From the NCBI GenBank assembly GCA_015680685.1, contig MNCI01001868.1, positions 21,621-85,620 on the forward strand: DNA of 64,000 nucleotides, given 5' to 3'. Shown piece by piece: positions 39,301-64,000 of this stretch. Each line of letters opens with the position of its first letter. Within the stretch, counting starts at the first letter, position 1. This DNA is from Gnetum montanum (lineage: Eukaryota; Plantae; Gnetophyta). The position numbers and the translations under genes are program-made. Under the pieces are notes generated by a model. That model saw nothing but the letters and a program-made list of their open reading frames with translations, was not told where the DNA came from and ran no database searches.

Positions 39301-41790
39301 GCCATGGTGTCACAAGTGGAAGCATTAACAAGGGCTCTTCATAGGATGGAGTTAGAGTTGGGGCTAGCAATTAACAAGGGAAAATCTACTTTACATTTCA
39401 CCAACACCACAGGGCTGGTAAGCAGAAAAATCGTGCAAGTGCTGGGCATTTTGCCTGGTAGGCAACACGATTCTTACTTAGGGATGCCAATTTTTTATTA
39501 GCATTGGAAGAATGCATGGATGGGGCTGCTAGAGAGGTTGCGTTCAAAGACAACACATTGGGGTAACTGGTTTCTATCCCAGAAGGGTAAAATGTTGCTA
39601 GCCTCAATGGTGCTACTGGCTACGGCCCACAACATCTATGACTATCCTGTCGGTCGAAGTCCTCCAGAAGTTGATCAAATCATTAGACACTTCATCTAGT
39701 CCAAGGGAAAAGGGGGAAAAAACTTCACTTGGTCTATTGGAAATTGATAGTGTGCCCACGGGTGGCAGGAGAAATTGGGATCCTAACCTTTTTGGATGAG
39801 ATCATGCTCGACATGCAACACTTGGTGAATAGATTGTTGATGCAGGCCAAGGGACAAGCTTTGTGGATGAGGATACTGCAATAGAAATACCATAGATGGG
39901 AGGCTAATGCTAGGAGTTCGCACTTATGGAAGAATATCTACGAACATGTGAGAAAAATGGAGGCCAAGGGACTACTAGACAAAGCCCCGTCCAAGGTGAT
40001 CAAGTGTCTACACCTGACAAAGGTGGGGTGGAAAGAGCTATGGAGAGGAAGACTACCGGACAAGGTGAAGGCTTTCAGTTTGCTTATTAGACATAATGCC
40101 CTACCAGTATGGGCAACCTTAAGGATGCGGGGAATCATCATTAACCTTACTTGCCCCCTTTGTAATGTGGCAGTTGAAACATTAGCACACTTTATTAACC
40201 AATGTCCATTCATGCAGGAGGTCTGCAGAACAGCTCAAATTGATCCCCCAATAACCCCCTGTGGTGACTCCCAAGCATTGGCTATATTATGGTCCTCTTG
40301 GAAATGCAAGAACCATTATATCTTCAGAGGGCAATGGCTGTTGGTGCCTTTTGCGATTGTTAGGGCTAGGTTTTTGTTGTGGGCAAAAGTGACGCATGCC
40401 ATGGGATGGGGGCCAACTCACGACCCAACAGTCACTAAATTCACAGGAGATGTACAACTTTGGTTGCTAATTGCAAGAATGGGATGGGAGAGCATGCTCT
40501 AGCGCATGGAAGGGGAGCTAGGGTTACCAACTGACAATTTCTTTGTGAACTGGGTGGGGGATGAAACCTAGTTCAGGGGCAAAAGGATAAGGATCACCAA
40601 GACAGTGCTGGAGGAGGTTTTGGGGGTGCCAACAGAAGGGGAACTTATTGCTCCGGCAATCCACTCTCACATGTTTGTTGTAGAATTTTGCCGGGGCGCC
40701 ATTCCGCAGACTGCTAGGGGCCACATCTGCAAAAACAAATTGACAAGGATTTGGAAAAATGCAACTATTTTTGTCGACCTGTATTTCGTTCAATCGGAGT
40801 CACCGCACAGGCTCGTGGTGGTTCACTTCATGTTCCTCCAATGCATCAGGCACAGTATTCGAGTCAACATCCTTTTGTTTTTTCATTGACTCCCTCAAAT
40901 GAAAATGACCTAAAAGACATTCTGGGGTAATCTTGGCTCTATGGAGGGCAAGGCAAATGGAAATACCAATACAAGTGAGGACAATGCTGGCCTTGGTGTA
41001 TTAGCAGAGGCATCAGAAACAAGAGCAGGGGACTTAGTTGCTAGAGGTACAAGGGGGATTGACGGAAATGGGACAAGCATCTTGTAGCAACATGCAAACT
41101 GCAGGGACTAACGTTTCAGAGGGAGGGCAGCCTACTCTAAATGAGCGCTCACTAGAAAGAATGGTTGTAGTGTGTCAATCCACAACTGAGCAGTTGAGGA
41201 GAGAAGAAAGGATAGCATGGTAGTCCCACTAGGAGGCAATGCAGGCAACAATTCAGAGGGAGGCGAATGTGCAAAGGATGAAGGATCTACAGGTCATGGA
41301 AGATCTGTTTGAGTGCCACATCGCCAAGTATGCTCATATGGTAGAAACATAAGCAGTGGTGGGAGAGTTGCAAGGGTGGAAACATGGGCACAACAGGCTA
41401 CAGCTAGGATTGTGAATTAGGATGAGACACCTGAGCAAACAAGGATAAAGTGAATGGCGGCTTTGGACGTGTCACAGGTTGTGACCTCGAGCATTGAGAA
41501 AGGATTGATGGGAGCCAACCTAGCAAAGGATGCAAAAGGCTAATTTCTGGTTAAGGCCAAGTTAGTTTGAGGGATTGGGGCAGATGTTGGGACTGTGATG
41601 GCGATGGCTGTATGCTTTTTGGCTTGACATCTAGCAAGCTCTTCTTTTTTTGTGCATGCGGAAAGGCTTGGGGTTGTGGGCTAGGACAAGGGGCACTTTC
41701 AATTCCTTGGTGGATTCTAGCATGAGTTGATGCCATTGTAAATTATTTCTCTCTCCATTTTAATTTATCTCAAAACTTTCTCAAAAAAAA
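35788..41790 (+). mobile_element. LINE copy D: near full-length, degenerate, no recognisable J-domain
   Basis: ORF1 DUF4283-like (LGKF...APWFYKAQGLALLPW...IWVRILDLPLEF) and knuckle CSTCGKGHPTKDC; ATGA at 37309-37312; APE, RT (HYADDT), zf-RVT (CPLC...HFINQC), PF20167-like domain, coiled coil; ends CTTTCTC(A)8. Putative TSD AATGTATCAT at 35778-35787 and 41789-41798. Confidence 0.9.
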
Positions 41791-42577: not shown

Positions 42578-43125
42578 ATTTTTTTTTTTTTGAGAGGTCA
42601 GGAGATTGTATCATATATAAAAAGAAGTACACAAGTTGGTCCAAAAAGTAGAAAGAGTGGAGCAACTCTCCCCAGAGAGTGGAGGTGAGGATCCCCCATT
42701 ACAAGTGAAAGAAAAACAAGGGATTAAAACAGAGACATCAGCTGAGAGGCTATAGTAAAAAACAAGATAATGGCCCCATGACCCTGAAAACCCCAAGAAC
42801 CAACAACAAAGACCGCTGACATAATGATAGAGTTGAAAACTCATCATCTTGGAAAGAGAAGGAACTTGCAACTGCAAACCAATCTTTCCTCAATGTGGAC
42901 CCTATCCACAATACTCCTTTTAGCCTTGGACTTGATAAAACTGTAGGCTTCCTGAAATCTCTAAAATTCACTTTGGCACTTATCCTTTTGTTGAGGTGTA
43001 ACATATCCCTTGACTTTTGTAACACCCATTCATAAGGAGCAAGAGCTAGCACCCGAAGCCCCCTAAAAAGAAGAAAGTTGAAAGAAGAAAATGCCCAGGT
43101 GGCTTTCTTTCTACAACCATCAAAC
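42578..43125 (-). mobile_element. Short 5'-truncated LINE-like 3' remnant
   Basis: Minus strand ends ...AATCTCCTGACCTCTC(A)n (T-run at about 42578-42591), resembling the 3' termini of the other LINE copies, with a T/G-rich UTR-like body. No domain recognised. Confidence 0.45.
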
Positions 43126-43431: not shown

Positions 43432-45640
43432 CCCAGCTCTGCCCAAGGAGGGGTGCATCTGGGTATTCCACCCGGTCCAGTGGAGGAAATCTGCCTCTGT
43501 TGCCTGTAGCTTTGTCTCCTGGAGGCAGACAATATCACAGTTCTCGACTTGAATAATCCTGCGCAGGGTATTTCTTTTGTACGGGGTACCCTGTCCCCTA
43601 CAATTCCAGTTGAGCAACTTCATGGGTGACTGGGGGCACGGCGTTGATAGACCTCCCGGAGGGTCTGTTGTAAACCCAGGTCGATGTTCCTCTGCGTCTG
43701 TTTTCCTCGGGTTTGGTTCTCACTAGGCCTTCCTGGGTGGCGGTCTCCCCCGAGCGGTCCCGGGTTGCCGGCCTGAGCGACAGGGGAGGCTGTCGGCTCC
43801 GGAGCTTTGCACGTTGAGCTCCCCCGGACCACGTTTACCCAGTCGCCAAGGGGAGGAAGCTCGAGCTCAGTCGCNNNNNNNNNNNNNNNNNNNNNNNNNN
43901 NNNNNNNNNNNNNNNNNNNNNNNNNNNNNNNNNNNNNNNNNNNNNNNNNNNNNNNNNNNNNNNNNNNNNNNNNNNNNNNNNNNNNNNNNNNNNNNNNNNN
44001 NNNNNNNNNNNNNNNNNNNNNNNNNNNNNNNNNNNNNNNNNNNNNNNNNNNNNNNNNNNNNNNNNNNNNNNNNNNNNNNNNNNNNNNNNNNNNNNNNNNN
44101 NNNNNNNNNNNNNNNNNNNNNNNNNNNNNNNNNNNNNNNNNNNNNNNNNNNNNNNNNNNNNNNNNNNNNNNNNNNNNNNNNNNNNNNNNNNNNNNNNNNN
44201 NNNNNNNNNNNNNNNNNNNNNNNNNNNNNNNNNNNNNNNNNNNNNNNNNNNNNNNNNNNNNNNNNNNNNNNNNNNNNNNNNNNNNNNNNNNNNNNNNNNN
44301 NNNNNNNNNNNNNNNNNNNNNNNNNNNNNNNNNNNNNNNNNNNNNNNNNNNNNNNNNNNNNNNNNNNNNNNNNNNNNNNNNNNNNNNNNNNNNNNNNNNN
44401 NNNNNNNNNNNNNNNNNNNNNNNNNNNNNNNNNNNNNNNNNNNNNNNNNNNNNNNNNNNNNNNNNNNNNNNNNNNNNNNNNNNNNNNNNNNNNNNNNNNN
44501 NNNNNNNNNNNNNNNNNNNNNNNNNNNNNNNNNNNNNNNNNNNNNNNNNNNNNNNNNNNNNNNNNNNNNNNNNNNNNNNNNNNNNNNNNNNNNNNNNNNN
44601 NNNNNNNNNNNNNNNNNNNNNNNNNNNNNNNNNNNNNAAGAGCTGTCGGGGTTGGGGTCTTTGCTGCGCCCGGCCTGGCAAGCGACAAGCGGCCACCAGG
44701 TGCCCCGGTTTGCCGCATCTCACGCACCCAGCCCGAAGGGGTCCTTGGGTGGCCGGGCGGCTCTGTGGGCCGTCCGCCGTCTCCAAATTGTCAAAAGTCA
44801 CCTCGAGTTTCTCCTCCCCTCCAAGGAGCTCCAGAATCACCTCCCGGATGAGGTTCTCTTTCGTCAACGGGCGCCAAACGCAGAATCGGGCGAAGCCCAT
44901 GCACTCCATGGACATGGTGACCCGGTCAAAAGCAATGAACTCCCCGAAGAAATCCGCGACTTGTCGCAGAAACTCAAGGTTCCACAGCTCCCAAGGGAGG
45001 CGGGAGACCCGGACCCAGACCGGCGCTTTAGCAAATATGTCTGTCTCCCGATGGGCCCCCGGTCTCCAGGGGGTCAACGCCAGGCCCCTCGCACCGTAGA
45101 ACCACGGGCCCCCCAGCAGGACCGAGTCCCGGGCTTGCCGAGAGGGAAGGATGAACAGCATGAGGTCGGGGGTCAGGCTCCTCACCCCGACCTCTCCCAC
45201 CTGCCACTGTTCTCGGGCCCAGCGCCTGACCAGGTCCAATCGTGGCCGCGCACCCCGTGACACGAAGCGACCAATGAGGCTCCATTGCAAGGTGCGGACC
45301 CCCTCAGGGGGGGGGCTGGGTGACCCGGAGGTGTAAGGTGTCTGCGGCCCGAGAGTGGGCCGCAATGCAACCCCCGGGGAGGGCGGTGGCCTGGTGTGGT
45401 CCCCCGTCGGTCGGCGGTTCTTGTTGGCCACGTGGTTCGTCCACCCGCGGAGGTTGCTGCGGGTCTTCTGCGGTGTCCTCCTGCTGGCGTGCGTGCATCC
45501 GCTGGTCCTGCTCCTGCTCCTCCATCCGCTCTTGTGTCAGCGCTTGTCGGTGCTCCGGCTGCTCCTGCTGTGGCCCCGCCGTCGGCGTCGGCGTCTGCGT
45601 CTGCTCCTGCACGGTCTGCGTCTGCTCCTGCATCTTGAAG
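43432..45640 (-). mobile_element. LINE copy E: young GC-rich 5' half (ORF1 + start of ORF2), cut at a single-N gap
   Basis: ORF1 from about 45633 (MQEQTQTVQEQTQT...) through a C9 homopolymer frameshift to DUF4283-like SLIGRF...GGPWFY...PVWVRVSRLPWELW and CCHC knuckle CVRCGKPGHLVAAC; ATGA at 43623-43620; ORF2 MKLLNWNCRGQG...CLQETK. Near-identical to copy F. Confidence 0.92.
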
Positions 45641-46616
45641 TTGACCTATCGACCTCTGTAATGATGGTCTTTCATCTCCTATTTGTTCAATCACATAATA
45701 ATATTTTATAATTTCCAGCCACACACAAAAACAAGATCTGAATTTAACTCTTGTAACCATTTTACCAATAATCATTTAATCAGGAAATTCATATGTTCAA
45801 TAGCAGAGAATAGATAGATCACAACCATAAATTAACATCCTAGGTTTTCCCCCACTCCATCAACTTATAAAAAGATATTAAAATCAAACTTCAGAAGGTA
45901 TAAGAAAAAAAATAAGTATAATTCAAGATTGAGATCCAAGATTTATGCATTCAAAAGGGGAAGGTTCATCAACCAAATTCCAAGANNNNNNNNNNNNNNN
46001 NNNNNNNNNNNNNNNNNNNNNNNNNNNNNNNNNNNNNNNNNNNNNNNNNNNNNNNNNNNNNNNNNNNNNNNNNNNNNNNNNNNNNNNNNNNNNNNNNNNN
46101 NNNNNNNNNNNNNNNNNNNNNNNNNNNNNNNNNNNNNNNNNNNNNNNNNNNNNNNNNNNNNNNNNNNNNNNNNNNNNNNNNNNNNNNNNNNNNNNNNNNN
46201 NNNNNNNNNNNNNNNNNNNNNNNNNNNNNNNNNNNNNNNNNNNNNNNNNNNNNNNNNNNNNNNNNNNNNNNNNNNNNNNNNNNNNNNNNNNNNNNNNNNN
46301 NNNNNNNNNNNNNNNNNNNNNNNNNNNNNNNNNNNNNNNNNNNNNNNNNNNNNNNNNNNNNNNNNNNNNNNNNNNNNNNNNNNNNNNNNNNNNNNNNNNN
46401 NNNNNNNNNNNNNNNNNNNNNNNNNNNNNNNNNNNNNNNNNNNNNNNNNNNNNNNNNNNNNNNNNNNNNNNNNNNNNNNNNNNNNNNNNNNNNNNNNNNN
46501 NNNNNNNNNNNNNNNNNNNNNNNNNNNNNNNNNNNNNNNNNNNNNNNNNNNNNNNNNNNNNNNNNNNNNNNNNNNNNNNNNNNNNNNNNNNNNNNNNNNN
46601 NNNNNNNNNNNNNNNN

Positions 46617-46840
46617 GGGGTGGGTCAGCAAGTGACGGCAGGCGCATTGCAGACGTTCAAGCTCATGGAGCAGGTCCAAAGTGTTACGATGCTCCTTAGT
46701 ATTCATGAAGTTCGCCGCTTGTTGGATGCCTTGCATGGCAGATTCCCGTCTGCTCCAATCCACCGGTGAGTCGCCCGCATCCGGATGACAACGCGTTGAG
46801 GTTCGCCGGATATGTCTCCGAAGCTCCCCCCAGGAATTAT
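46617..46840 (-). mobile_element. LINE 3' fragment encoding a J-domain with intact HPD, head-to-head with copy F
   Basis: Minus strand reads [75 protein letters not shown]; HPD at 46787-46779; runs into the N gap. Confidence 0.85.
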
Positions 46841-48410
46841 TCAGACGCAGACCATGCAGGAGCAGACGTAGACGCAGACGCCGACGGAGGGGCCACCGCA
46901 GGAGCAGCCGGAGCACTGACAGGCGCTGACACAGGAGCAGACGGAGGAGCAGAAGCAGGACCAGCGGGTGCGCGCACACCAGCAGGAGGACACTGTAGAA
47001 GACCCGCAGCAACCTCCGCGGGCGGACGAACCACGTGGCCAACAAGAACCGCCGACCGACGGGGGACCACACCAGCCCACCGCCCTCACCGGGGGTTGCA
47101 TTGCGGCCCACTCTCGGGCCGTAGACACTTTGCGCCTCCGGGTCACCCAGCCCCCCCCCCCTGAGGGGGTCCGCACCTTGCAACGGAGCCTCATTGGCCG
47201 TTTTGTGTCACGGGGTGCGCGGCCACGATTGGACCTGGTCAAGCGCTAGGCCCGTGAACAGTGGTAGGTGGGAGAGGTCGGGGTGAGGAGCCTGACCCCC
47301 GACCTCATGCTGTTCATCCTTCCCTCCCGACAAGCCTGGGACTTGGTCCTACTGGGGGGCCCATGGTTCTACGGTGCGAGGGGCTTGGCGTTGACCCCCT
47401 GGAGACCGGGGGCCCATCGGGAGACCGACCTATTTGCTAAAGCGCCGGTCTAGGTACAGGTCTCCCGCCTCCCTTGGGAGCTGTGGAACCTTGAGTTTCT
47501 GCGACAAGTCGCGGATTTTTTCGGGGAGTTCATTGCTTTTGACAGGGTCACCATGTCCATGGAGTGCATGGGCTTCGCCTGATTCTGCGTTTGGCGCCCG
47601 TTGACGAAAGAGAACCTCATCCGGGAGGTGATTCTGGAGCTCCCTGGAGGGGGAGTAGAAACTTGAGGTGACTTTCGAGAATCTGGAGACGGTGGACGGC
47701 CCACAGAGCCGCCCGGCCACCCAAGGACCACTCCGGGCTGGTTGCGCGAGATGCGGCAAACCTGGGCACCAGGTGGCCGCTTGTCGCTTGCCAGGCCGGG
47801 CGCAGCAAAGACCCCAACCCCGACAGCTCTTTGAAGGTGGCGAATGGGTCACCATGGGACGCAAAGGCCGTTTACGACCGACCCCCAATGCGCCACCCCA
47901 CCAGAACACCCCCCCCAGAAACTCGACACCAACAGGCNNNNNNNNNNNNNNNNNNNNNNNNNNNNNNNNNNNNNNNNNNNNNNNNNNNNNNNNNNNNNNN
48001 NNNNNNNNNNNNNNNNNNNNNNNNNNNNNNNNNNNNNNNNNNNNNNNNNNNNNNNNNNNNNNNNNNNNNNNNNNNNNNNNNNNNNNNNNNNNNNNNNNNN
48101 NNTAGACAACCCACTACACCCCCCTGTCACCCTTACCAACCATCACCCCCGAAGCGGCGACTGAGCTCGAGCTTCCCCCCCTTGGCGACTAGGTAAACGT
48201 GGTCCGGGGGAGCTCAAAGACGCGCAAAGCTCCGAAGTCGACAGCCACACCTGTCGCTCAGGGCAGCAACCTGGGACCGCTCGGGGGAGACCGCCGCCCA
48301 GGAAGGCCTAGTGAGAACCAAACCCGAGGAAAACAGACGCAGAGGAACATCGACTTGGGTTTACAACAGACCCTTCGGGAGGTCTATCAACGTCGTACCC
48401 CCAGTCACCC

Positions 48411-51400
48411 ATGAAGTTGCTCAGCTGGAATTGTAGGGGACAGGGTACCCCGTACAAAAGAAATACCCTGCGCAGGATCGTTCAGGCCGAGAACTGTGAT
48501 ATTGTCTGCCTCCAAGAGACAAAGCTATAGGCAACGGAGGCAGACTTCCTCCACTGGACCGGGTGGAATACCCAGATGCAACCCTCCTTTGGCAGAGCTG
48601 GTGGCATGGCTACCATTGCCCAGTACACCATGAATCTCGTGGACGCTTCCCATTGGGCCCTCACTGTTCAGCTCCCCTCACAGGGGGTCTGGCTGACCAA
48701 TTTCTACGGTGCCCAGAATTGGGAGCAGCGCATCCAAGAGTTGGCGCGGGTGGCACGGCTGATTCCAGACCACAGGTCTTGGATTTTGGCTGGAGACTTC
48801 AACCAGCGCCTGCACCCGTGGGAGAAGTTGGGGGGAGCTGCCCCCCCACCACCTGGTGCTGCTGAGTTCCAGGATTTCCTGTCAACTTTCTCTTTGGTCG
48901 ACCTGCCCATTGAGAATTGTCGTTTCACGTGGAGCAACCGACAGAAGGGCCCGAATCAGGTCCTCACCCGTATTGATCGGATTTGCATCAGCACGGACAT
49001 GATGCTTCGTTCCTCGGTACGGGTGACCAGGCATGAACGGGTGGCTTCTGATCACCGCTCGCTGACAGTTCCCATTGGACCGGCTAGGCCAGGCACCCCG
49101 CGCCCCTTTCGCTTCGAGGCGTCATGATTGACCAAACCATGGTTGAAGCCGATGGTGGAGGCAATCTGGACGGACTATCAGCCCGGTAGGGAGGACCCCT
49201 GGAACTTCCTGCGGGAAGCGTTACTCTGGCTGAAGTGGGCTATCAAGGCCCGCCCAATGGCGGACAAGTTTTCCTTCCGCACTGGTCAGCGTGAACTCTG
49301 GGACCTGCTCGGCAGGATTCAAACTCGGCAGGAGGCGGGGGAGGATCTCCATGCGGAGGAGCAGCGGACGCTGAGGCAGCTGCAGGCCCTGGATCAGGAG
49401 GAGGAAACATACTGGCGGCAGCGCTCCCTGGTGCGCTCGTTTCGGGACGGTGACCGGCAGACCAGATTCTTCTTTGCCATGGCCAAGTCGCGGGGAGGCG
49501 GCATGCCTAAAAGTCTCTGAAACCAGGACGGAGACATCGTTGATGACCCGCAGCGCATGGCACAGATGCTAGCGCAGTATTGGGGGGGGATTTGGGCTAA
49601 ACGTCCTATCAGGCCGGTCTCGGTTCCAGTCCCACGAGTGCTGTGCGCGCAAGATAATGCGCGGCTGTTGGCTCCTTTCTCCTGGCANNNNNNNNNNNNN
49701 NNNNNNNNNNNNNNNNNNNNNNNNNNNNNNNNNNNNNNNNNNNNNNNNNNNNNNNNNNNNNNNNNNNNNNNNNNNNNNNNNNNNNNNNNNNNNNNNNNNN
49801 NNNNNNNNNNNNNNNNNNNNNNNNNNNNNNNNNNNNNNNNNNNNNNNNNNNNNNNNNNNNNNNNNNNNNNNNNNNNNNNNNNNNNNNNNNNNNNNNNNNN
49901 NNNNNNNNNNNNNNNNNNNNNNNNNNNNNNNNNNNNNNNNNNNNNNNNNNNNNNNNNNNNNNNNNNNNNNNNNNNNNNNNNNNNNNNNNNNNNNNNNNNN
50001 NNNNNNNNNNNNNNNNNNNNNNNNNNNNNNNNNNNNNNNNNNNNNNNNNNNNNNNNNNNNNNNNNNNNNNNNNNNNNNNNNNNNNNNNNNNNNNNNNNNN
50101 NNNNNNNNNNNNNNNNNNNNNNNNNNNNNNNNNNNNNNNNNNNNNNNNNNNNNNNNNNNNNNNNNNNNNNNNNNNNNNNNNNNNNNNNNNNNNNNNNNNN
50201 NNNNNNNNNNNNNNNNNNNNNNNNNNNNNNNNNNNNNNNNNNNNNNNNNNNNNNNNNNNNTGTTGCATGAGGTCCATGGCAATGATGAAGAGGAGGGGAG
50301 AGAGTGGGTCCCCTTGCCTCAGCCCCCTCCCAGGGGACNGCTGAACATTGCGGGGGTGACCTGTCGGGCGGAGCATTATGCGGATGACACGATGCTGCTT
50401 AGCAAGGCGGCGGTCCCGCAAGCCCGATGCATTAATTTGGCGTTGGATCGGTTGGCTGCGGAGCTGGGGTTGGCAGTCAACAGGGCGAAGTTCGCAGTCT
50501 ATTTCGTGAACGTGGACAAGCAGGTCCAAACGAGGGTGACGCAAACGTTGGACATTAGGCCAGGGATTCCCACCGACATTTACCTTGGCATCCCCCTTTT
50601 TCGGTGGGGGCGGTCCACGACGTGGGGCCCCCTGNNNNNNNNNNNNNNNNNNNNNNNNNNNNNNNNNNNNNNNNNNNNNNNNNNNNNNNNNNNNNNNNNN
50701 NNNNNNNNNNNNNNNNNNNNNNNNNNNNNNNNNNNNNNNNNNNNNNNNNNNNNNNNNNNNNNNNNNNNNNNNNNNNNNNNNNNNNNNNNNNNNNNNNNNN
50801 NNNNNNNNNNNNNNNNNNNNNNNNNNNNNNNNNNNNNNNNNNNNNNNNNNNNNNNNNNNNNNNNNNNNNNNNNNNNNNNNNNNNNNNNNNNNNNNNNNNN
50901 NNNNNNNNNNATAATAAATACGTCCGCTGGGAGGCGACGACGCGGGACTCCAAGTCCTGGCAGGTGGCGGCCCGGCACGCGCGCGACATGCAGACCTCGG
51001 GCTGGGCGCATCTTGAGCCAAGAGCCATCATGGCGGCGAAATACCCCCGATGCAACACGTGGCGGAAGATTTGGAAAGGAAGGCTGCCAGAAAAAATTAA
51101 ATTCTTTCTCTGGCTGCTGCAGCACGAAGCGCTGCCAGTCCGAAATTTATTGAGGCGGCAGGGGGTGATCGAGGCGGACACGTGTCCGACATGCGGGGGT
51201 GCGGGGGAGACTGTCGCACACTTTGTACGCGACTATCCCCGCACGCGCGACGTGTGGCGCGCAGCCGCTGTGCCCCCCCCCCCCCCCCCCCCCCGAGGCA
51301 TGCGACTGGGGATTCATGGGCCGCCCTACTTCTGTGGACGGTATGGAAGGCCCGCAACAATCTTATCTTTTGGCAGCAGCGGCGCCCCCCTCCACAGCGG

Positions 51401-52690
51401 CTGGTCTGGCAGGCGTCCTGCGCGTGGAAGGAAATCGAGAACGCCATGGGACAAACGCCCACATACGAGCCTGACTGCACCGTTTTTCAGTAATTCGAGG
51501 AGCTCTGGCAGCTGGTGATTCAATGTGGATGGGATGTTCCTCTGCAGCGGCTTGGTGGGGACCCAGATTTGGCTGATGATGCCTTCTTTTCCAACTGGGT
51601 CAACGACTGCACCTTCTTCAGGGGGCGGGAAATCAGGGTCACGGAGGCGGCTATCGCCAGCTGTCTGGGGACCCCCATCGCTGGGGAAACCATCCTACCA
51701 TCAACCCACGGCCTCCAGGACGCAGAGATGTTCTTCAGTGGGACCATCCCCAGGACCAAAAGTCGGCAGGTGCCTAGATCTGCTCTCCCCNNNNNNNNNN
51801 NNNNNNNNNNNNNNNNNNNNNNNNNNNNNNNNNNNNNNNNNNNNNNNNNNNNNNNNNNNNNNNNNNNNNNNNNNNNNNNNNNNNNNNNNNNNNNNNNNNN
51901 NNNNNNNNNNNNNNNNNNNNNNNNNNNNNNNNNNNNNNNNNNNNNNNNNNNNNNNNNNNNNNNNNNNNNNNNNNNNNNNNNNNNNNNNNNNNNNNNNNNN
52001 NNNNNNNNNNNNNNNNNNNNNNNNNNNNNNNNNNNNNNNNNNNNNNNNNNNNNNNNNNNNNNNNNNNNNNNNNNNNNNNNNNNNNNNNNNNNNNNNNNNN
52101 NNNNNNNNNNNNNNNNNNNNNNNNNNNNNNNNNNNNNNNNNNNNNNNNNNNNNNNNNNNNNNNNNNNNNNNNNNNNNNNNNNNNNNNNNNNNNNNNNNNN
52201 NNNNNNNNNNNNNNNNNNNNNNNNNNNNNNNNNNNNNNNNNNNNNNNNNNNNNNNNNNNNNNNNNNNNNNNNNNNNNNNNNNNNNNNNNNNNNNNNNNNN
52301 NNNNNNNNNNGACAGCGGCAGCAGGCGGAACAGGAGGAACATGCCCGACTTAGGGAGGAGGAAGAGCAAAGACAGCGGCAGCTCGACCGCGCTCACGAAC
52401 ATAGCGCCCGGCAGTGGCTACGGGGGGGACGTTGCCCATACCTCATGTTAGGTATTAGCAGCGAAAGTTCCTGGGGTAGCCTTCGAAGGCACGTCCGCCG
52501 AACCTCGGCACAATGCCACCCCGACGCGAGCACTTCCACGAATGACAGAAATAGAAGGCAGGCAGCCATGCAGGGTCTCCAGCAGGCTACCAGTTTCATG
52601 GACACGGAGGAGCACCGCAATACCTTGGACCTCCTGCATGAGCTGATTCAGCCGGATTGTGCCTGTAAACAGCTCCCCACCAACCCCTAA
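48411..52690 (+). pseudogene. LINE ORF2 polyprotein of copy F: APE - RT - zf-RVT - plant-transposon-like domain - coiled coil - J-domain
   Basis: Assembled from ORF-track pieces 48576-49127, 49128-49520, 50341-50634, 50911-51493 and 51515-52690, with isolated premature stops and gaps. Confidence 0.8.
52433..52636 (+). other. DnaJ-type J-domain at the C-terminus of LINE ORF2
   Basis: [31 protein letters not shown]...[22 protein letters not shown] aligns to DnaJ [31 protein letters not shown]...[22 protein letters not shown] with identical 28-residue spacing to the His; HPD at 52517-52525. Confidence 0.8.
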
Positions 52691-55509
52691 GGTGGTGGGG
52701 GGTCATCGGTCGTCGGGGGGGGGGGGCCCCCCAGTCTCCAATTTCTGTTTTGAGTTTGCTGAGTTTTGCTGTTTCTTCCGGGGGGGGGCCCCCCCCCCCC
52801 CCCCCCCGCCCGGTGGGGCCGCCGCTGGCGACCCTGGTTGTAATCTTATGTAACATAATTTGATCTTTCATAATAGAATCCCGAATACTTTCTCAAAAAA
52901 AAAAAAGATATTTCATAATTCAATTTTTGCTAGATCTTAGGTTCAATTCCTCTTGATAATTACAAAACATTCTAGAATAATATTTATCTCTTTATCATTC
53001 AGAATTGTCATAAGATGCATGGAAAGAGTTTTCAAATAGATTCATGATAAGGGCAGTTCAAGATACATAATCAAATAAGGCACCTTCTTTTTCAGGTCAT
53101 CAGCGATGTGAATTTTCCCATCGTCTTACGAGCCTTGAAAGGTCATCACGTGACCTTTCTACAGCAATGGAGAGGGTACTTATACTTTAATATTTTAAAC
53201 TAAAAAGAGCAATGCATCACATTTAGATAAAATAAAATATAAAGCTACAGTATTTGCAAACAATATCCCTAATTCATGAGTCGGGTTCCTCCAACTTGAT
53301 TCATAGGTCAAGTTCCTCAATATGAGCATTCTTTTGCATCTCAACATACCTGTTTTAGCTCTTGAGGCACACCTTAGAGCATTGTCCTCTGTTTTTCTTT
53401 TGTTTCTCAGCATCTCTATTGAAATAGAACAGAAAATATTTTGTTTTCCCATATATTATTTATTATTACTATTTTAAAACATTCCTAGTATGTATATTAA
53501 ATCATATTTCTTATGCATAAAGTATTTAAACATTGAATCATAATACATATAAAAATTTGGTCAACAAATTTATTACTATTCCAATTAGCCATTTCCACCA
53601 TAGTCCAAATAGAGCACACACACAAGTTGTCAACAAAACATGCACACAAACACACAGAAAGACTATTACAATTGTTAACACAAAAACTCAAGGAGAAGTG
53701 GTTCATTACAAGTTCACTCCACAAGGTCATCTGATGAATCCCAAGTTCAACATACATAACACTTGCTAGATCTAAACCAAAGCCTTCACAATGCTCTACA
53801 AATTATCAAGAAATCGTTGTTAAACTTCCCCCTACTACTGCTCATCCTGGATCTTCTTTGCTTGTTGTCTTTTGGCCTCCTACTATGTCAAACGCTCCTC
53901 TCAATGTCTATCCTGTTCTTCATCCCAAAGAATCTCCTACTGCCTTAGTTTCTCCTCCCACCTAATACGCTCCTGCTCAGCCTCTTCCTCAAGTTGGTGT
54001 TGAACCTGCTTGCAAATCTAATCCAGCTCAATCTGCTGACAACGTTGAGCCTCCCATTTCAGATGCAACTCAATATCTCCTGTGGCCCTTACAATCTCCT
54101 CTGCCACCGTAGCATCCACCTCCTTGATGACTTCCTCAAGCTCTCTGAGCCAAACTTCTAACCTGGACTGAAACTCTGTTTGTAATTCCTCCCAGACCTA
54201 TGGAGAAATTTGGCTCCTTAAGCAGTCCTCAATCCTTGGGGAAGCTCTATGTAACACCTCATTCTAGAAACATTGAACTAACTCCTAAAGCCCCCGAAAT
54301 GTTGCCTGAAATGCAAGGCTGAAATTTTTTTTCAAATGTTAATCAATCAACAAAAATCCAATCTTCCATTCAGACCAGCATAGACAACAGTCAGCTCAAC
54401 GTAAAAAGACTAGAGCATAACATAGAAAATTATATGACACAAACAGTAGCCCTGGGATCTAGCAAGAAGAGAATGCCAATATGACGATTGACATCTCTTA
54501 AGATACACTAAGCATCCAGGGTACAATACAGCATCAAAACAACTAAATTTGAAATCATATTATTCATAGCTATCCAACTCAGCAACAAGCCAATAAACTC
54601 TACCAATTCACCTTAGCAATTTTAAATTATGCACAGTCGACATAATCAGCCATATGGAAGGTGAAACTATAGGAAAGCACCATATCCATGAGCCTAAAAA
54701 ATTGCAAAGTGGAATACAATAATAGTATAGCAACTGAGAAACCATCTCCCTATCTATTCACTATATCATAAATGATGACACAATATTCACAGTTCAGCAA
54801 GTACAAAAATTAGAAACCAAACTGTACACATTGATGATCTTGCTTAAATGAATAATTGGCCAACAAGAAGAATAATCACATGAAATAATAATTCATGAAT
54901 CAGATTAATAAAAATCTAACAGACAATCAAGGCAACCACAACTAGCAACAACAAACAAACTACAATGTATAATGATATCAAATAAGTGGCCAACACAGTC
55001 TGATATTAGTACACGTATATCATGTGTAGGTGTTAGAGAGAATCCAATGCTAGCTACGTTGGTTTCTTGCTTGCAGTAGTGATACAAAACCTTAAATTTC
55101 TGTACAAAATATAATTTAGGCAAAAGCTAAAGATCCATAATAGAAGATTGTATTCCAATTCTTCCAACAAATTGTGTACATCTCAGATTTTGGTTTCAAC
55201 CGATGCCAATTTCCTGAAATAAAAGATGAATATAAAAAGAAAAAATCTGCTGTAAAAATCTTATGCAAGATTCTTCTGATACAGTGCACAAATCTGATTT
55301 TCTTTTATTCACAAATCAAATTCTAATTTTCTTGAACCATAAAAGAAATATCTCTGAATACAATTCATCAACTAATTTGCTCAACCTAACTGTTGCCCAC
55401 AAGAAACATAAGAAACAATAATTACAAATCATAGGTATAACGATACGCAAATCACAAGTGCATGGTTAACAAATCACGCAGTATAACTTGTGCATGGTTA
55501 ACAAATCCA

Positions 55510-58500
55510 AGTGCATGGTTAACAAATCATGGCTGGGTGAGCTTGTGCAGTCTATCTGGTCAAGGTATAACGATACGCAGGAACCATGTGATTTCCTCAA
55601 AAACAGCCTCCAGACACTCAAACGTCAAATTAAGGCCCTAGCCGCAAAGGACAGGTACAACTTCAAGGGGTATAGGACACAACTGCAATCACACCTACAG
55701 GACATCCAGAACCAACAAGAGTGTGGCACCAATTTCGCTCAAGAGGAACTCGCCCTCTTAGTGGAGCTGCAGACCTTAGACTAGGAAGAGGAGGAATACT
55801 AGCGTCAAAGAGCTCAGATACAATGGCTCAAGGCTGGCGACAGACATACGAAATTCTTCTTTGCCGCTGCTAAGGCACACCGGGGGACCCGCCACCAATT
55901 GCAACGCTTGATTCACGACCTGGGTAATGGGGAACAACGTAAATCATCTTATGGCCCGGACACCCTGCTGCACTACTGGCAGCAGGTCTAGAAATGGCAA
56001 AACACGGACCCCATCTCCCTCTCCATCCCGCATATCCTCACCCCATCCGACAACCAGTGCCTCATGCAACCTTTCTCCCGCGCCGAACTCCATGCCACTA
56101 TGCAGGCCATGTCGGCAGATAAAGCCCTAGGACCGGATGGGCCCGCGCCGAACTCCATGCCACTATGCAAGCCATGTCGGCGGATAAAGCCCTAGGACCG
56201 GATGGGTGGCCCATTGAATTCTTCCGCGAATTCAAAGACTTGATTGGGCAAAATCTGCTTGATGCCTTTAACTGGATGCTGGCCTGGCAACAGGTTCGTA
56301 AGGAAATCAACTGCTCCCGCGTGGTCCTGCTTCCGAAGACGGCCAACCCCACATCTCCAGGACATTTCTGCCCCATTGGAGTTTGTAACTCCATCCTAAG
56401 ACTTTTCTCGCAGATGGTGCTTGCCAGGATGGTGCCCCTCATGCCACGCTTGGTCGGGCAGCACCAGGCTGGGTTCGTCAAAGGCCGTCATCTCCAAGAT
56501 CAAGTGCTGCTCCTACAGGAAATCCAGCACTCTCTCAAAATCGCCAAATTCCCCAAACTTTGCATCAAATTAGACATCACAAAAGCTTATGACTTCGTAA
56601 GCTGGACCGCCCTCAAGACTGTAATGCAAGCAAAAGGGTTTACGAAACCTTTTGTGGACTTGTGCCTCCAAATTCAAAAGGGAGGACGTTATTCGCTAAA
56701 CATTGACGGCCACCTCTGGGGCTTCCAAGGCACGGGTTGCAGGCTGCGCCAAGGAGACCCCCTGTCCCCGCTCCTGTTTCTCCTGGTGATGGACCTCCTA
56801 CACACATACTGCGCGGAGGAAGGCGTGCATGGTCTGGACATCCACGGAATCATATGGTTAACCGCCCACTACGCTGACGATACAATGATCTTCACCCGTG
56901 CCGCCATGCCCCAAGCTCGGGCGCTCTTGCGGGCAATGGACAGGATGAAGTGGGAAGTGGGGTTGACCACCAACACAGGCAAGTCTGCGATATACCTAAC
57001 CCATACCCATCCCAGTGTCTGCACTAAGATCATCTAGATCTTGGGGATTCTCCTAGGGAGCGAGGAGGACACGTACCTGGGAATGCCAATGCACAACTGG
57101 CACAAACAGCGAACCTGGCAGGCGCTCATAATGAAACTTCAAACACACACAACTCACTGGGCGAACAAGTTCCTGTCTTGCAAAGGGAAGATCATACTGG
57201 CAACTACTGTGCTGGCGACCATGGCAAGATTCGCCGCCTCCATGGCCACACCACCATCTGGTGTCATGCAGCACACTGACACGCTCACTCATGATTTCGT
57301 GTGGTCTTGGGGTAAGGGCGGACAGAAGATGCAACTGGTTTCTTGGGAGAAGACCACACACCCCCGCCAAGTGGGAGGTGTCAGCATCCTTCAATTTGCC
57401 GTCGAGGCTGCCTTGGGCAAGCAGCGGCTTCTCCACAGAATCTCCAGGCAATCCAACTACCCCCCCCCCCCCCCCGGTGGGTGCAACTCCTAGTACGGAA
57501 ATACCGACCCTGGGAGGCTACCGCGTCTAACTCCTTGGTCTAGCACCAACTCTATGCGCATGTCCACACCCTCACCCATGAAGACGAGACCGCATTGCAC
57601 CCCCGTGAATTGCTCAAACGCCAATTCCCGGAGGATCCTCGTTGGAAGCGCCTATGGAAAGGCCGCCTATTGGAAAAAATTAAGGCTTTTGGGTGGCTAG
57701 TCTTGAACAAGGTGCTTCCCGTACAGACGCGTTTGCAAGCACATGGCATGCATATTAACACCATCTGCCCGATGTGCAATCAACGCGATGAGACGCACCA
57801 ACACTTCGTGCATGAGTGCCACGTCGCTAGGAACTTCTAGAGTACGGCCAGCCTCCCCCTGCTCGAATGTTACGGCAATTCACAGACACTTGCAGCCTTA
57901 TGGACCATCTGGCATGCCAGGAACGATCGAGTCTTCAAAGGGACAGCTATCCCCTCGCCTGCCGCGCTGGCTCACCAGTTCAGAAGATAGTGGGACGAAA
58001 TTACTGCACTAATGGGACCGCGTGCCTGTCTCGAGCCGCCAACTACCGACATTCAAAAACAAACTGATCTCTGGCATATGGTTTCGCGGATGGGTTGGAC
58101 TACCTTGCTCCAATGCATCGCAGCAGACTCGAAGATGGACGTCCAACCATTCTATGCAAACTGGAACAGGGAGTACACGGTGTTTCGCATACGCCAAATC
58201 CAAGTTACGGTTGACGCTTTGGCTGAGGCCATTGGTGCCCCCGCAACGGGGGACCTAATTCCCCCTGTGGCTCGGTCCCAGGCGGATGCCATCAAGTTCT
58301 TCCAGGGCTCCATCCCCTGGACGACCAACGGCCACATCCGGGGGTTGGCCCTCTCGCCAACCTGGCGGGCCGTGGTCGCGATGGTGGAGCGTTACTTCAT
58401 TCAGTCGGGTTCCCACCACAGACTCAACGGGGTGCACTTCATGTTTCTCAAGCACATACGTGTCGAGACTCCTATTAACCTCCCCCACTTCCTCTGGGAG

Positions 58501-59244
58501 TCTCTACAACGACGCCGGCCTGGCTGACACCTAGGGGTGATCTGTGCTCTTTGGCGGTTTGGCACTCTGGTTCCACTGCTCAAGCCTACGCTGGTGTATC
58601 AAAGGCGGAGGGGGAGCAGAGGCCATCCGGCGGGGGGTGACGTGGTCTCGGCTGAGCCTACGGCCGTGTCCTCCCAGGACCTTGCAGGTGGGGGTTGCGT
58701 GCAAGGCAGGCCAGCCCAGGCCCCGCTACAGGATTCGTGGGCTACGGATACCGACCCCAGAGCGATCACAACTGGGTAGGCGAGCAATGACAAGGGGCTA
58801 GTTCGGGTTGTTGGGGGAGCGCTCTCTAGGAAACAGACCCTGCCCCCACACTCTCACAGCCAGATGCTGCAATGGATTGAGAGCCTCATCAACGACCACA
58901 TGACAAGTATTGCCCAGCTAATTGAAGAGAATCGCCATCGCCTAGCTGCTGGCCCAAGCACATAGTTCCCGGACCTCCAAACCCTCGAGGAGAGTTGGAG
59001 CTCTAACCATGACCACCCCAAAAGCCCCTAACGTGGGGTGGGGCACTGGGGCATGCCCAGCTCAGTCCGAAATACTATTTCAAGGTCCAGGGTTGGGACC
59101 TTTAACCCGCTAACGGGAATGCCCTGATGCGGTCGAGACTCACAAGGGGCCCAGGGGTTTGGGTCCCATTGTCAATGTGGGGTCAGCTGCCCTGGCCTAC
59201 GCTATACCTTTGTATAGTCGTTCTTTTTGGGAATAAATTTCACT
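55510..59244 (+). mobile_element. LINE copy G: 5'-truncated ORF2 (RT, zf-RVT, PF20167-like), divergent tail without a J-domain
   Basis: RT 56165-57037 ([24 protein letters not shown]); zf-RVT CPMC...HFVHEC; extra domain 58012-58527; ends ...AATAAATTTCACTC with no A-tail. Confidence 0.92.
56077..56206. repeat. 65-bp tandem duplication in LINE G ORF2
   Basis: CCCGCGCCGAACTCC...GGACCGGATGGG at 56077-56141 and 56142-56206, with 2 mismatches. Confidence 0.85.
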
Positions 59245-62200
59245 CGACAAATTTACATTGTCGATGGAGCACATGGCTTTTGCTCAATTCTGTGTTTGGC
59301 GAGCCTTGTCATCCAAGGACCTAGTCAAAGAAGTTGTGCTTGAATTACTAGGGGGCAAGGAATAGCTCTGGGCAGAATTTGAAAACTTGGAGGAGGAGAA
59401 GCTGGCGAAGATAATCACGCTTGCCAAGAAGGGATGCTCCCTATGCGGGAAAAATGGCCATAGCAAGGTTGAGTACCGATTTTAGGGGTAGGGATGGAGG
59501 CAAGCCAAGGTGCCTACGCAACATCCCATGATCGATCCCAAAGGCGAGGAATGGCCCCTGGCGGGGCAATGGGGCCAGGTGCCATTGACTATTGACCCTC
59601 GTGTGCCCAAGGTGGTGCCTGCAAGGGAGCACAGCATCTCTCGCTACCCTGCCTTCAGTCATAGCCACAAAAGTGAGGGTCGAGCTCCCCCTGTTGGGTG
59701 AGTGGGTTAATGTGGCTTGGGGGAGTTCTAGGCCACAGATGCCAGTTTCAACTCCTCTGCTTATGGAAGATTCTGGTAGTTTTCCGGTATCGTCAAAGGT
59801 GGGTAGGCTGGGTTGCCCATCCGATCTACTTTAGCGGGACAAACAGACAAGGAGGAGTATCAACTTGGGAATATAGCAAACCCTAAAAGAGGTCTACCAG
59901 TGATGATCCACCAATAAAGCATGAAGATCCTCTTACGGAACTATAGGGGACAAGGCATGCCCTATAAAAGAAATACCTTGTGGGAGATTGTGCATAGTGA
60001 GGAATGTGACATTGTTTGCATGCAAGAAACTAGGCTACAGGCTTCAGAAACATTCCACCTGCGATGGGTGGGTTGGAATCTGCACCTAAGGCTGTGTCAG
60101 GGGCATCACAATGGAGCATTACCATATATGTGCTGTCCCAAAGCCTTTCGTTGACGAATTTCTATGGGGCCCAAGCCTAGGAGCTTCGGTTGCAAGAGCT
60201 GGAGAGGGTAGCAGTGTTGATTCCAAATCAACAGACTTGGCTCATTTGTGGATGATTTCAATCAACGGTTGTACCCCTGGGAAAAGTCGGGAGGGGACTG
60301 CACCAATCCTCAAGGGGCCTAGGAGTTTCAAAACTTTTTGGTGTCGCACTCACTAGTTGACTTCGAGATTGCGAATTGTCAATTTACATGGAGTAATAAG
60401 TGTAGGGGGGCCGAACGGGTTTTCTCTAGGATCGATTGGGTTTGGGTCAGCTCGGAGCTTCTGTCAATTAGACGTACAAGTTTCCGATAAAGAGCAGAAG
60501 GCTTCAAATCACAAGTCAATCCCCAGAATCGGTTGCCTCGATCCTTCAGGTTCGAAGTTTCATGGCTGATCAAGCCATGGTTGCACCCTTTGGTAGAATC
60601 TGGGCAGATTATCAAGGGGATAGGTAGGACCCTCAAAACTTTTTGCAAGATGGGCCTCCTCTACTTGAAGTGGGCTATCCGATCACAAGTCATGCAATAT
60701 AAATTCTCTTTCCGTTTTGGACACCAAGACCTCCAATCCTGGCTGAATTCAATTCAAGCTCGGCAAGAGTCAGGAGGGGACCTGCAGGATGAGGAAGCAC
60801 GGGTCTTTGAGCAATTGCAAGCACTAGACTTGGAAGAGAAAACTTATTTGCAGTAGCAGTCGCAAGTCAAATGGCTTAGGGAAGGTGACCAACAAACAAG
60901 ATTCTTCTTTGCGACTACTAAATCTAGACGACTACACAAGCACCACCTTAGTATGACGATTGACGAATCCCTGGTGGATGATCCTAAAAAGGTCGCTCGG
61001 ATACTAGTTGACTATTGGGGCATGATTTGGGCAAAGCAAACTACATCACCGATATTGGTGCAGGACCCACAGGTGTTGGATGAAGGGGACAATGCTCATC
61101 TGTTGGGCTCATTCACTCTGCAAGAGTTAACGATGGCTATCTATGCTTTTGTGGGGGGGGGGGGGGGGGGGGGAGGGGAGCAAGTCACTTGGGCCAGATG
61201 GTTGGAAAGTCAAATTCTTTAAGGAGTTTATTGATATAGTGGGGCCCAATGTGCTCAATGCATTCAACCTAATGTTGGCTAGATGCCAGGTACGCCGAGA
61301 GATTAATTGCTCTAGAATTGTCTGCATCCCCAATTGGGCTAACGCTTCCTCCCTTGCTCATTTCAGACCCATTGGGGTCTATAACATTTTGATCAGAATC
61401 TTCTCTAAGATGATCATCCATCGATTGGTCCCCATCATGCCCAAAGTTGTCAACGATAACCAAACAGGGTTTGTTCAAGGGCGTTTCTTGCAGGACCAAG
61501 TGATACTTATGCAAGAAATTTTGCATTCCCTACACATCTCGAAATTCCCTGGACTGTGTCTAAAACTGGACATTACAAAGGTGTATGATACCATCAATTG
61601 GGAGGCCATTGCTAACATTATGTTACAGAAGGGCTTCGATCCTGCATTCGTGCACCTATGCATCCAAATGTAGGAGTTGGCCGCTTTGTCCTCTGATGTG
61701 GGGGATTGGCTATGGGGATTTTCCTCCCCCGGTAGGGGGTTAAGGCAAGGGGACCCCTTGTCACCATTGCTTTTTATCATCACCATGGACCTCTTAAAAT
61801 ACTATTGCAAGGTTGCAAGGGTGCAGGGGCTGGAAATCATGGGGGTGAAGTGCTTGGTCAAGCACTACATGGATGACACGTTGCTTCATGGTTGGGCTAG
61901 GGTGCCCCAAGCACTTACCTCTATGGTGGAGGATATTGACGTAGTGATCAATCGGGAGAAGTCCTTGGCCCACTTTATCAATGTGGACTCAAAAATAAGG
62001 AGTCAGATCACACAGGTGCTGGGGATTCTCCCAGGATCCTCCTAGGATTCATACCTTGGGATCCCACTATTTGCATGGGGGCAACAAGCTTCATGGATTG
62101 ATGTGCTTTGGAAAATTGAGGGTTGGGTGGGCCATTGGGTTAACCGGTTTCTATCTAGGAAGGGGAGACTTTTGTTGGCATCGGGGGTGCTTTCGATGAT

Positions 62201-64000
62201 GGCATGTTTTGTGGTTGTTGTGGCTAACCCCCCTACCTCACGCCGTAATTCAGAATATCAACTAGCTAATTCGAAATTTCATATGGTTGAGGGGTAGAGG
62301 GGGAAGTAAATTGCATTTAGTCAAATGGGATAAGATTGCCTACCCTTGGGAGGCAAGGGGCCTCAGCATTTTCAAATTTGAAGACAAATTATGATGGGAA
62401 GACAAATTATAGGGTTTCCCAGGCTCAAAGCATGTGGAAAGAGATCAAGGCGGCAATGGGTGTCACGCCAACATACAAGCCTAACTACACCACGTTCCAG
62501 GTAGAGGAAGAGCTTTGACAAATGGTGGAACAGTGCAGCTGGAGTGGTGCCCTGCAACGGCTAGTTGGTGACCCGGACCTATCAGATGACACTTTCTTCA
62601 CCAATTGGCACAACGATCGAACCTACTTTCGGGGGGGGGGGAGGAGAGAGAGAGATCATCATCACATAAGCTTCGATTGCCAGGTGTCTGGGGGCCCAGC
62701 CCGATGACGAAGTCATCTTACCATCTGCGAGCACACTACAGGACGCAAAACTATTCTTCAATGGGCCAGTGCCACGCACGCAGAGCAAACAAGTGCCCAG
62801 ATCCTCCCTGCCCTGAATTTGGGCCCAGGCGGTGAATCTCGTGGACAGATATTTTATCCAGTCTGGCAACGAATCTAAACTCCAAGGCATCCACTTCGCC
62901 TTCCTCAAATGCCTTAAGTTAGGACATAGGGTTCACTTGCCTCGGTTTTTTCTGACGACCCTACAACTACAGAGGCGAGGCCGTCACTCAAGGCTCATCC
63001 TAGCCCTATGGCGGGGGGCAGCGAGGGGCAAAACTCATCGAAGTCGCAGAGTGCACCCCCCCCCCATCGGGGAGGTCCCTCACCTAGTCCATCTTCTTCG
63101 GCCAGCCAAGAAAGCCTCTGGACCCAGCCAATGTGGAAAAGACGCAGCCAACAAGGACGGAGACCCCCAAACCCCACGGCGGAGCCGAAGACGTGGTCGC
63201 CCGAAACCTCGAGGCGCAACGAAAGCAGGGACAAGGAGCTACAGCAAGTGGCACAGGAGGCCGTAGCCACGGCATGTGATGCTAAGTGTTGGGAATGGGA
63301 GGCACAATGGTAGGAAGCCCTTGCGTAGGCCCAGGCCGAGCTGGAAACCCAGTTCCAGGAAAGGGAACATGAGAGAGTTAGACAACAAACCCTCCTAGCC
63401 AATGCAGCCTGGGCCAGGCTAGTGGACAAGATTCGGGCCCAAGTGAGAGACAAATTACTTCAGGAGGAAATTGCCCGAAGGGAGCACGAGGAGGTTGAAT
63501 GAGCTCAGCGCGAGCGAGAACAAGAGGAAGAGACACTGAGGTAGCGCCAGCTGGACCGAGCACACGAACATAGTGTGCGCCAATGGCTGAGGGCTGGACA
63601 GTGTCCATACCTCATCCTTGGCATCAATTGTGACAGCACTTGGGGGGAACTCAGGCGCCACATCCGTCGAACCTCGGCATGTTTCCATCTAGATGGGGGG
63701 ACGTCGACGACGGATAGGAATCAACGGGAATTGGCCATGCAAGGAATCCAGCAAGCCGCCAGTTTTGTGGACACGGAGCTCCACCGTAACACGCTGGACA
63801 TCCTTCATGCACTGGAGCGGCCACACTGTGCCTGCCATAGGCTACCAATGAGCCCATAGTGGGGTTGCAGTTTTCGGCCCCCCCCACCTCCCTCTTTCCT
63901 AGGGTTGAGTTGCCCCCTATTGTTTTTGGCTTTCAGCGTCTTGAGGTAACAGTTTTGGCATGTTGATTTTGGGTTGTAACCACACCCCACATGGGCCAAC
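59245..64000 (+). mobile_element. LINE copy H: 3' part of ORF1 + ORF2 with J-domain remnant (HLD); 3' end beyond the window
   Basis: ORF1 tail (FCVW, CSLCGKNGH), ATGA at 59921-59924, APE, RT ([15 protein letters not shown]), zf-RVT deleted at about 62390, PF20167-like domain, coiled coil, J-domain CPYLILGIN...HLDG at 63602-63697, stop at 63859. Confidence 0.92.

Follow-up and report, generated by a model that had tools for sequence, protein, structure and literature searches.

A long interspersed nuclear element (LINE) designated copy F lies, with further copies designated by letter, within a 64,000-nt stretch of Gnetum montanum DNA (assembly GCA_015680685.1, contig MNCI01001868.1, positions 21,621 to 85,620, forward strand; hereafter the window). 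A first-pass annotation, made from the letters of the window, had proposed that the second open reading frame (ORF2) of copy F, which encodes the reverse transcriptase (RT), ends in a J-domain with an intact HPD (His-Pro-Asp) motif. J-domains stimulate the ATPase of Hsp70 through this motif. The translation of 52433-52690 is identical to the one on which that proposal was built (85 residues, CPYLMLGI...PTNP, followed by TAA at 52688-52690), and HPD, encoded by CAC CCC GAC at 52517-52525, falls where it had been placed, 28 residues past the first tail position, with His as residue 29. The tail had also been said to be followed by a 3' untranslated region (3' UTR) and poly(A); a 204-base 3' UTR and an A12 tract at 52895-52906 do follow, and G+C falls from about 60% to 35% past the A12 tract. 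The tail of copy F is therefore within a polyadenylated element, whose 3' part reads as follows.

52313-52432, plus strand: E/R/Q-rich predicted coiled coil and linker, directly upstream of the J-domain, from the translation.
52436-52630, plus strand: predicted J-domain, helices I-IV, from Pfam DnaJ, the structure model and structure searches.
52637-52666, plus strand: terminal H-x6-C-x-C, from a regular-expression scan of seven tails.
52688-52906, plus strand: stop, 3' UTR with G12, G9 and C19 runs, and A12 tail.

The proposed match to the J-domain profile was obtained. Against Pfam, the sole match of the copy F tail was DnaJ (PF00226), with E = 2.7e-6 and a score of 27.8 bits, at the curated cut-off, across the whole profile (positions 2-63 of 63). 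The tail of a second lineage, fragment M, which covers part of the domain and has HPD, matched the same family at E = 0.0041 and 17.6 bits. When the tail was compared by phmmer with all PDB sequences, the eight matches were weak (E 0.13-2) and all eight were J-domains; a profile made from the window's own tails lifted the best PDB match, DNAJC8, from E = 0.14 to E = 0.0023. An hhalign comparison of three clean tails with one J-domain protein gave 61 columns at E = 7e-4, and in the ESM Atlas DnaJ was the top cluster for the tail (0.92, 22 of 30 hits). Helix II of copy F reads as very basic, with R/H retained in copies H and M. As judged from these comparisons, the sequence signal for a J-domain is genuine but modest, and similarity to cellular J-proteins is too weak to name a donor gene.

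The structural match that had been anticipated was likewise found. AlphaFold2 (AF2), given a 13-row alignment made up only of tails and tail pieces of the window, returned a model with a predicted local distance difference test score (pLDDT) of 76, in which helices span 12-16, 24-37, 46-65 and 69-85 and HPD lies at 39-41, right behind helix II. A model of the single tail sequence (pLDDT 58) gave meaningless Foldseek matches and was set aside for the alignment-based one. With the latter, the roughly 50 best Foldseek matches in the PDB were all J-domains (top probability 1.00; root mean square deviation 2-2.5 Å over 65-70 residues), including CbpA, Tid1, the DNAJB family, Sis1, Ydj1 and the DnaJ chain of the DnaK complex 5nro, with template modeling scores to the target of up to 0.80. 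VIA-align, which is independent of Foldseek, placed mostly J-domains among the first 13 of 48,161 chains (Z 8.5 to 6.8), and among the viral structures of BFVD the named matches were nearly all J-domain proteins from giant viruses, phages and baculoviruses. The weight of the fold evidence comes from J-domains occupying nearly every top rank and not from the size of the scores. By sequence profile and predicted fold, we consider it very probable that the tail is a J-domain.

A tail of this kind is found behind more than one copy. Within the window, tblastn and a family hidden Markov model (HMM) located seven tails belonging to seven insertions; the five homologues of the copy F tail named in the first-pass annotation (in A, B, C, M and H) were all recovered, and a seventh was added. 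Besides that of copy F, they are as follows.

9042-9350, plus strand: tail A, decayed, with three stops; HPN (CAT CCT AAT); family HMM 62.5 bits, E = 1e-20; poly(A) at 9695-9713.
23516-23775, plus strand: tail B, heavily decayed; HLK (CAT TTG AAA); family HMM E = 2.6e-4 and 0.021 on two pieces.
29700-29999, plus strand: tail C, decayed, with six stops; HSD (CAT TCG GAT); family HMM 49.4 bits, E = 1e-16; poly(A) at 30408-30424.
42856-42993, minus strand: seventh tail, C-terminal half, of a divergent copy; family HMM E = 7.9e-6; poly(A) at 42579-42591.
46617-46853, minus strand: tail M, a 5'-truncated fragment adjoining a masked run; HPD (CAT CCG GAT); tblastn and family HMM.
63545-63856, plus strand: tail H, coiled-coil end and J-domain; HLD (CAT CTA GAT); tblastn, 69% amino acid identity to F; 104 codons without a stop.

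Fragment M keeps little beyond the tail, as is expected because the tail is the 3'-most coding part of the LINE. The HPD motif, which the first-pass annotation had called intact, is so in F and M and is altered in H, A, C and B. Relative to HPD, a single transition (C>T or G>A) accounts for the motif of H, as it does for those of A and C, and B differs at more positions; the tails of A, C and B contain stops and are CpG-depleted, and in H the stops lie just upstream of a stop-free tail. The check on HPD conservation named in the first-pass annotation, made here on the window's tails, did not refute the J-domain: one transition leads from HPD to each of the H, A and C motifs. HPD itself is kept in two of the six tails that cover the position. 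The two ends of the domain were retained more strictly. All seven tails, even the most decayed, end in an invariant H-x6-C-x-C, and the cysteine of the CPY motif is kept in each tail that covers it, badly decayed ones included; in tail B the CPYLVLGV start and the H-x6-C-x-C end remain readable. The terminal H-x6-C-x-C and the CPY cysteine might together form a zinc site that staples both ends of the J-domain.

Comparison of the F, H and M tails points to long conservation at the protein level. These tails share 64-67% of their DNA and 61-69% of their protein sequence, and their differences at codon positions 1/2/3 number 24/19/59 between F and H and 21/12/47 and 20/18/42 in the other pairs. 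The proportion of synonymous differences (pS) is 0.79-0.82 and hence saturated, against a proportion of nonsynonymous differences (pN) of 0.19-0.22; Fisher's test, restricted to the 67 J-domain codons, gives P = 1e-13. In the 19 unmasked alignable codons of the coiled coil and linker, F and H differ with pN 0.08 and pS 0.82. The ratio of nonsynonymous to synonymous change, suggested earlier as a check on the J-domain, is accordingly non-neutral and far below 1, and since pS is saturated while pN is only about 0.2, the tail was under purifying selection. That the tail stayed conserved as a protein while co-existing lineages diverged for a very long time excludes both a one-off 3' transduction and neutral drift, so that the earlier claim of a family trait holds, with seven insertions and saturated synonymous divergence behind it. 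The profile match, the predicted fold, selection at the codon level and the anatomy of the 3' end together support the view that the tail belongs to the LINE family and lies in the frame of the ORF2 end.

Upstream of the tail, the following features of the element were recognized in copy F.

47268-47937, plus strand: ORF1 remnants, with a DUF4283-like piece at 47268-47450 and a CX2CX4HX4C zinc knuckle within 47659-47937; Pfam.
48315-49124, plus strand: apurinic-type endonuclease of ORF2; Pfam Exo_endo_phos, E = 1.4e-7 and 2.4e-7 on two pieces.
49573-51150, plus strand: RT region, partly N-masked; the unmasked 50341-50634 aligns to the RVT_1 reading frames of copies G and H.
51033-51257, plus strand: zf-RVT, after the RT; Pfam PF13966, E = 1.3e-14.
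51494-51790, plus strand: start of a Transposase_32-like domain, in the same open frame as the J-domain; bases 51791-52310 are masked.

In the decayed ORF1 of copy F, DUF4283 (E = 2e-4) and zf-CCHC (E = 0.0034) each score under the curated cut-off, and the CX2CX4HX4C motif is readable. RVT_1 matches at E = 6e-24 in copy G and 1e-12 in copy H, and zf-RVT (PF13966) was found in copies C, D, F and G with E from 1e-12 to 6e-17. An ORF1 with DUF4283 and a zinc knuckle and an ORF2 with endonuclease, RT and zf-RVT are markers of plant L1 elements (PMC5203782), and from this domain set the element is classified as a plant-type L1 LINE. Its predicted ORF2 is extended past zf-RVT by three parts, a Transposase_32-like domain, a coiled coil and the terminal J-domain. 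The first of these, about 200-250 amino acids long, lies between zf-RVT and the coiled coil (G 57991-58524, D 40455-40886, H 62507-63263, F 51494-51790), and its copy F portion is homologous to G 58066-58353, H 62507-62813, D 40455-40742 and C 29004-29252. In copy G its match to Transposase_32 (PF20167, "putative plant transposon protein") is faint by Pfam (E = 0.007), and the ESM Atlas gives 0.93 with 178 shared features. To our knowledge, Transposase_32 is otherwise annotated in other plant transposon proteins and not in LINEs. In H, A and C too, the same charged coiled-coil stretch precedes the tail in frame.

The open frame 51494-52687 of copy F joins the Transposase_32-like domain to the stop of the J-domain, and in copies D and G zf-RVT and the Transposase_32-like domain share one frame. 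Continuity from RT to J-domain is seen piecewise across copies, not within one copy. N-masking affects 36289-36317, 43875-44637, 45986-46616, 47938-48102, 49688-50260, 50635-50910 and 51791-52310, with single Ns at 29293, 43431 and 50339; the ten runs comprise 2,960 bases between 29293 and 52310, and the seven multi-base runs are located in the G+C-rich copies D, E and F or close to them, with copy H (59805-63856) free of masking. Copy G ends near 58530, where the 5' part of copy H begins (ORF1, with a decayed zinc knuckle near 59440), so that the two LINEs are nested or abutting and copy G is without a tail because the copy H 5' part begins at its end.

We propose, with a probability of roughly 0.6 for the account as a whole, that the window holds an old, diversified plant-type L1 group in which the J-domain of ORF2 docks host Hsp70 in cis. 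The docking step itself is modeled on the established mechanism of J-domains, and we rate it as somewhat favored. In this mechanism, the HPD loop and the basic helix II would dock host Hsp70 onto the ORF2 protein (ORF2p) in cis, and the docked J-domain would trigger ATP hydrolysis by Hsp70. Hsp70 would then clamp onto neighboring parts of the large ORF2 protein or of its ribonucleoprotein, and clamping could aid folding of ORF2p, binding of its own RNA, or remodeling for target-primed reverse transcription. Other reverse transcriptases depend on the cell for Hsp40 function; this element would in this way provide its own.

Several observations weigh against this proposal. The ORF2 of copy F is broken by in-frame stops at 49125-49127 and 49518-49520 and by at least three frame changes, 520 masked bases (51791-52310) lie inside its 51494-52687 frame, and no intact copy was found within the window, the frame from RT to J-domain being unbroken in none. 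The Pfam DnaJ score of the copy F tail, 27.8 bits, equals the curated cut-off of 27.8 and is borderline, and tail H (HLD) alone gives no Pfam DnaJ match; because tail M, which has HPD, matches while tail H does not, the sequence signal leans on HPD. The Foldseek E values (0.02-1) and VIA-align Z scores (no higher than 8.5) lie within what chance can give for small helical models. HMMER comparison of the tail with 1.84 billion protein representatives found no family relative, and a search for related loci in viral, bacterial/archaeal and metagenome contigs found none either; these collections are poor in plant repeats, so both results say little on range. Finally, copy D (37109-41790) has a conserved 3' end but no recognizable J-domain. 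It comprises an endonuclease, zf-RVT, a Transposase_32-like domain, a charged coil and the 3' end CTTTCTCAAAAAAAA at 41776-41790, and is either a lineage that lost the J-domain or a decayed copy with deletions. The J-domain trait is widespread among copies, though perhaps not universal. Faint J-domain traces can be read in copy D, an AMQ...Q stretch and H-x-E.

A few candidates from these searches were discarded. The HMMER matches of the tail consisted of two repeat artefacts and one protein with six J-domains, and were dismissed; one metagenome locus was rejected as a chance match of the word AMQGLQQ inside a bacterial conjugation-type gene cluster. A homologue search with the 125-amino-acid tail and the 398-amino-acid frame (51494-52687) returned none, within a length window that excludes full-length ORF2 proteins.

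The alternative that survives best, though we consider it unlikely, is that the J-fold is present but does not act on Hsp70, and forms instead a structural or nucleic-acid-binding C-terminus of ORF2p, perhaps held by zinc, in place of the Cys-rich end of other L1 ORF2s. Such a role would suit the retention of H-x6-C-x-C and of the CPY cysteine in each covering tail, even badly decayed ones, when HPD is retained in only two of six. The very basic helix II would equally suit RNA binding, and J-like domains without HPD function exist, such as the "pseudo DnaJ" 2cug among the Foldseek matches. However, the two stop-free, frameshift-free tails that cover the loop and retain the proline, F and M, both have HPD. 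In H, A and C the motif differs from HPD by one transition each, of a type that is typical of methylated DNA, in copies with stops in the tail (A, C) or just upstream of it (H), and purifying selection spans the whole J-domain, beyond the Cys and His positions.

Less probable still is that the coiled coil and J-domain are made as a separate small protein, an ORF3 product acting in trans on the ribonucleoprotein. The lack of any window copy with an unbroken frame from RT to J-domain leaves room for such a product, but the pieces argue for one polypeptide: in copy F the Transposase_32-like domain and all that follows down to the stop lie in one open frame (51494-52687), zf-RVT shares its frame with the Transposase_32-like domain in D and G, and the coiled coil of H, A and C passes in frame into the J-domain with no conserved start codon. 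The last alternative, that a short helical tail became J-like by convergence or chance, or that a host exon came in by a single 3' transduction, in either case without meaning for the family as a whole, draws on the modest scores (Pfam at cut-off, Foldseek E no better than 0.02, VIA-align Z no higher than 8.5) and on a six-repeat protein being the only J-protein above threshold in the HMMER search, and is largely refuted and very improbable, since four independent kinds of search all yield the J-domain family and nothing else, the match spans the whole domain with HPD in register, and a one-off capture is excluded by the presence of the tail in seven insertions, which represent at least three lineages and are saturated in synonymous divergence.

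Canonical L1 ORF2s end in a Cys-rich region, and those of some plant L1s in RNase H. As summarized in a later survey, some plant L1 ORF2s gained an archaeal-like RNase H after the RT (Smyshlyaev et al. 2013, via PMC5203782). Those elements share with the LINE described here the same clade markers and, likewise, a module gained at the C-terminus of ORF2; their added module is RNase H, whereas here it would be a Transposase_32-like domain, a coiled coil and a J-domain. In insect R1 LINEs, a superfamily 1 (SF1) helicase domain was added at the ORF2 C-terminus (PMC4686597), which is the same kind of C-terminal extension by a captured foreign domain, in another LINE clade and host kingdom and with a different domain.

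J-domains have also been taken up by other selfish replicators. Polyomavirus large and small T antigens recruit Hsc70 by a built-in J-domain, which is N-terminal in those proteins. Giant viruses, phages and baculoviruses likewise carry J-domains of their own, and the predicted fold of the tail matches viral J-domain proteins; no sequence kinship of the tail to viral J-proteins was found past the family level. The viral J-proteins belong to DNA viruses and the T-antigen J-domain stands at the N-terminus, whereas the putative J-domain of the LINE forms the C-terminus of a retrotransposon RT polyprotein. Among cellular proteins, class C (type III) J-proteins such as DNAJC8 resemble it in architecture: a J-domain is their one chaperone part and is combined with a coiled coil and with domains of other kinds. 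The tail differs in having neither a Gly/Phe region nor a zinc-finger client-binding domain nor a DnaJ C-terminal domain. For the proposed function, a precedent is the hepadnaviral RT (P protein), which acquires the capacity to bind its RNA only through activation by Hsp70 and Hsp40 (PMC2094093). An RT made competent for RNA binding by the Hsp70 system is the functional logic proposed here for the LINE tail, but the Hsp40 of the hepadnaviral system is a host protein acting in trans, and in the LINE the J-domain would be part of the RT protein itself.

The first-pass annotation had known of no LINE with a J-domain, and searches of the full text of about 8.4 million papers found none described for LINEs or other retrotransposons. 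In a survey of L1 elements in 503 genomes, 125 of them from plants, RNase H is the sole extra ORF2 domain and DnaJ is unmentioned (PMC5203782). A stronger form of our proposal, which we hold only tentatively and a little short of even odds, is that this is the first retrotransposon-encoded Hsp70 co-chaperone: a J-domain fused in cis to the RT, needed for retrotransposition, long kept across several co-existing L1 lineages of one plant genome, and stapled by a family-specific C...H-x6-C-x-C site unseen in cellular J-domains. LINE proteins are known to contain endonuclease, RT, RNase H, zinc knuckles, RNA recognition motif and esterase domains, and a chaperone-recruiting module would lie outside this set. 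Provided that the J-domain acts in the usual manner of its family, an RT's dependence on Hsp70/Hsp40 would be written into the mobile element's own gene, and tails with and without a working HPD would give a handle on the folding of a large ORF2 protein, its RNA binding in cis and its remodeling. The element would also be a clear case of a LINE that captured host or transposon domains and kept them under selection.

Beyond the tail, an inverted repeat of 92-95% identity joins 43433-45624 and 46842-48601, each arm carrying a 5' part of the F type (ORF1 and the start of the endonuclease). The arms stand head to head around a 1.2-kb center that contains tail fragment M and a masked run. Possible origins of the arrangement are a recent inverted duplication, a process resembling twin priming, and an artefact of assembly. 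The only candidate for a target-site duplication is a weak one, the 9-base CTAACAATA at 24919-24927 and 30426-34, which flanks copy C; if this duplication holds, copy C is possibly a 5.5-kb full-length insertion, a 9-mer match being weak evidence. A scan of the window against Rfam gave no match.

The 3' ends of the copies have features in common. Poly(A) runs lie behind six copies, each preserved tail being followed by a poly(A) of its own, and stop and poly(A) are some 200 bases apart in F and some 410 in C. The 3' terminal motif of copy F, TCTCAAAAA, also occurs in copies C and D and in the minus-strand copy, and in the form (C)TTTCTCAAAAA it stands right before the poly(A) in copies of different lineages (41776-41790, 52888-52906, 30404-30424 and 42579-42600). 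This shared motif may be the end recognized by the RT. The 3' UTR of copy F also has the homopolymers G12, G9 and C19 (52715-52807), with G9 adjoining C19, where older copies are without such runs; the C19 run could form a hairpin with the G runs.

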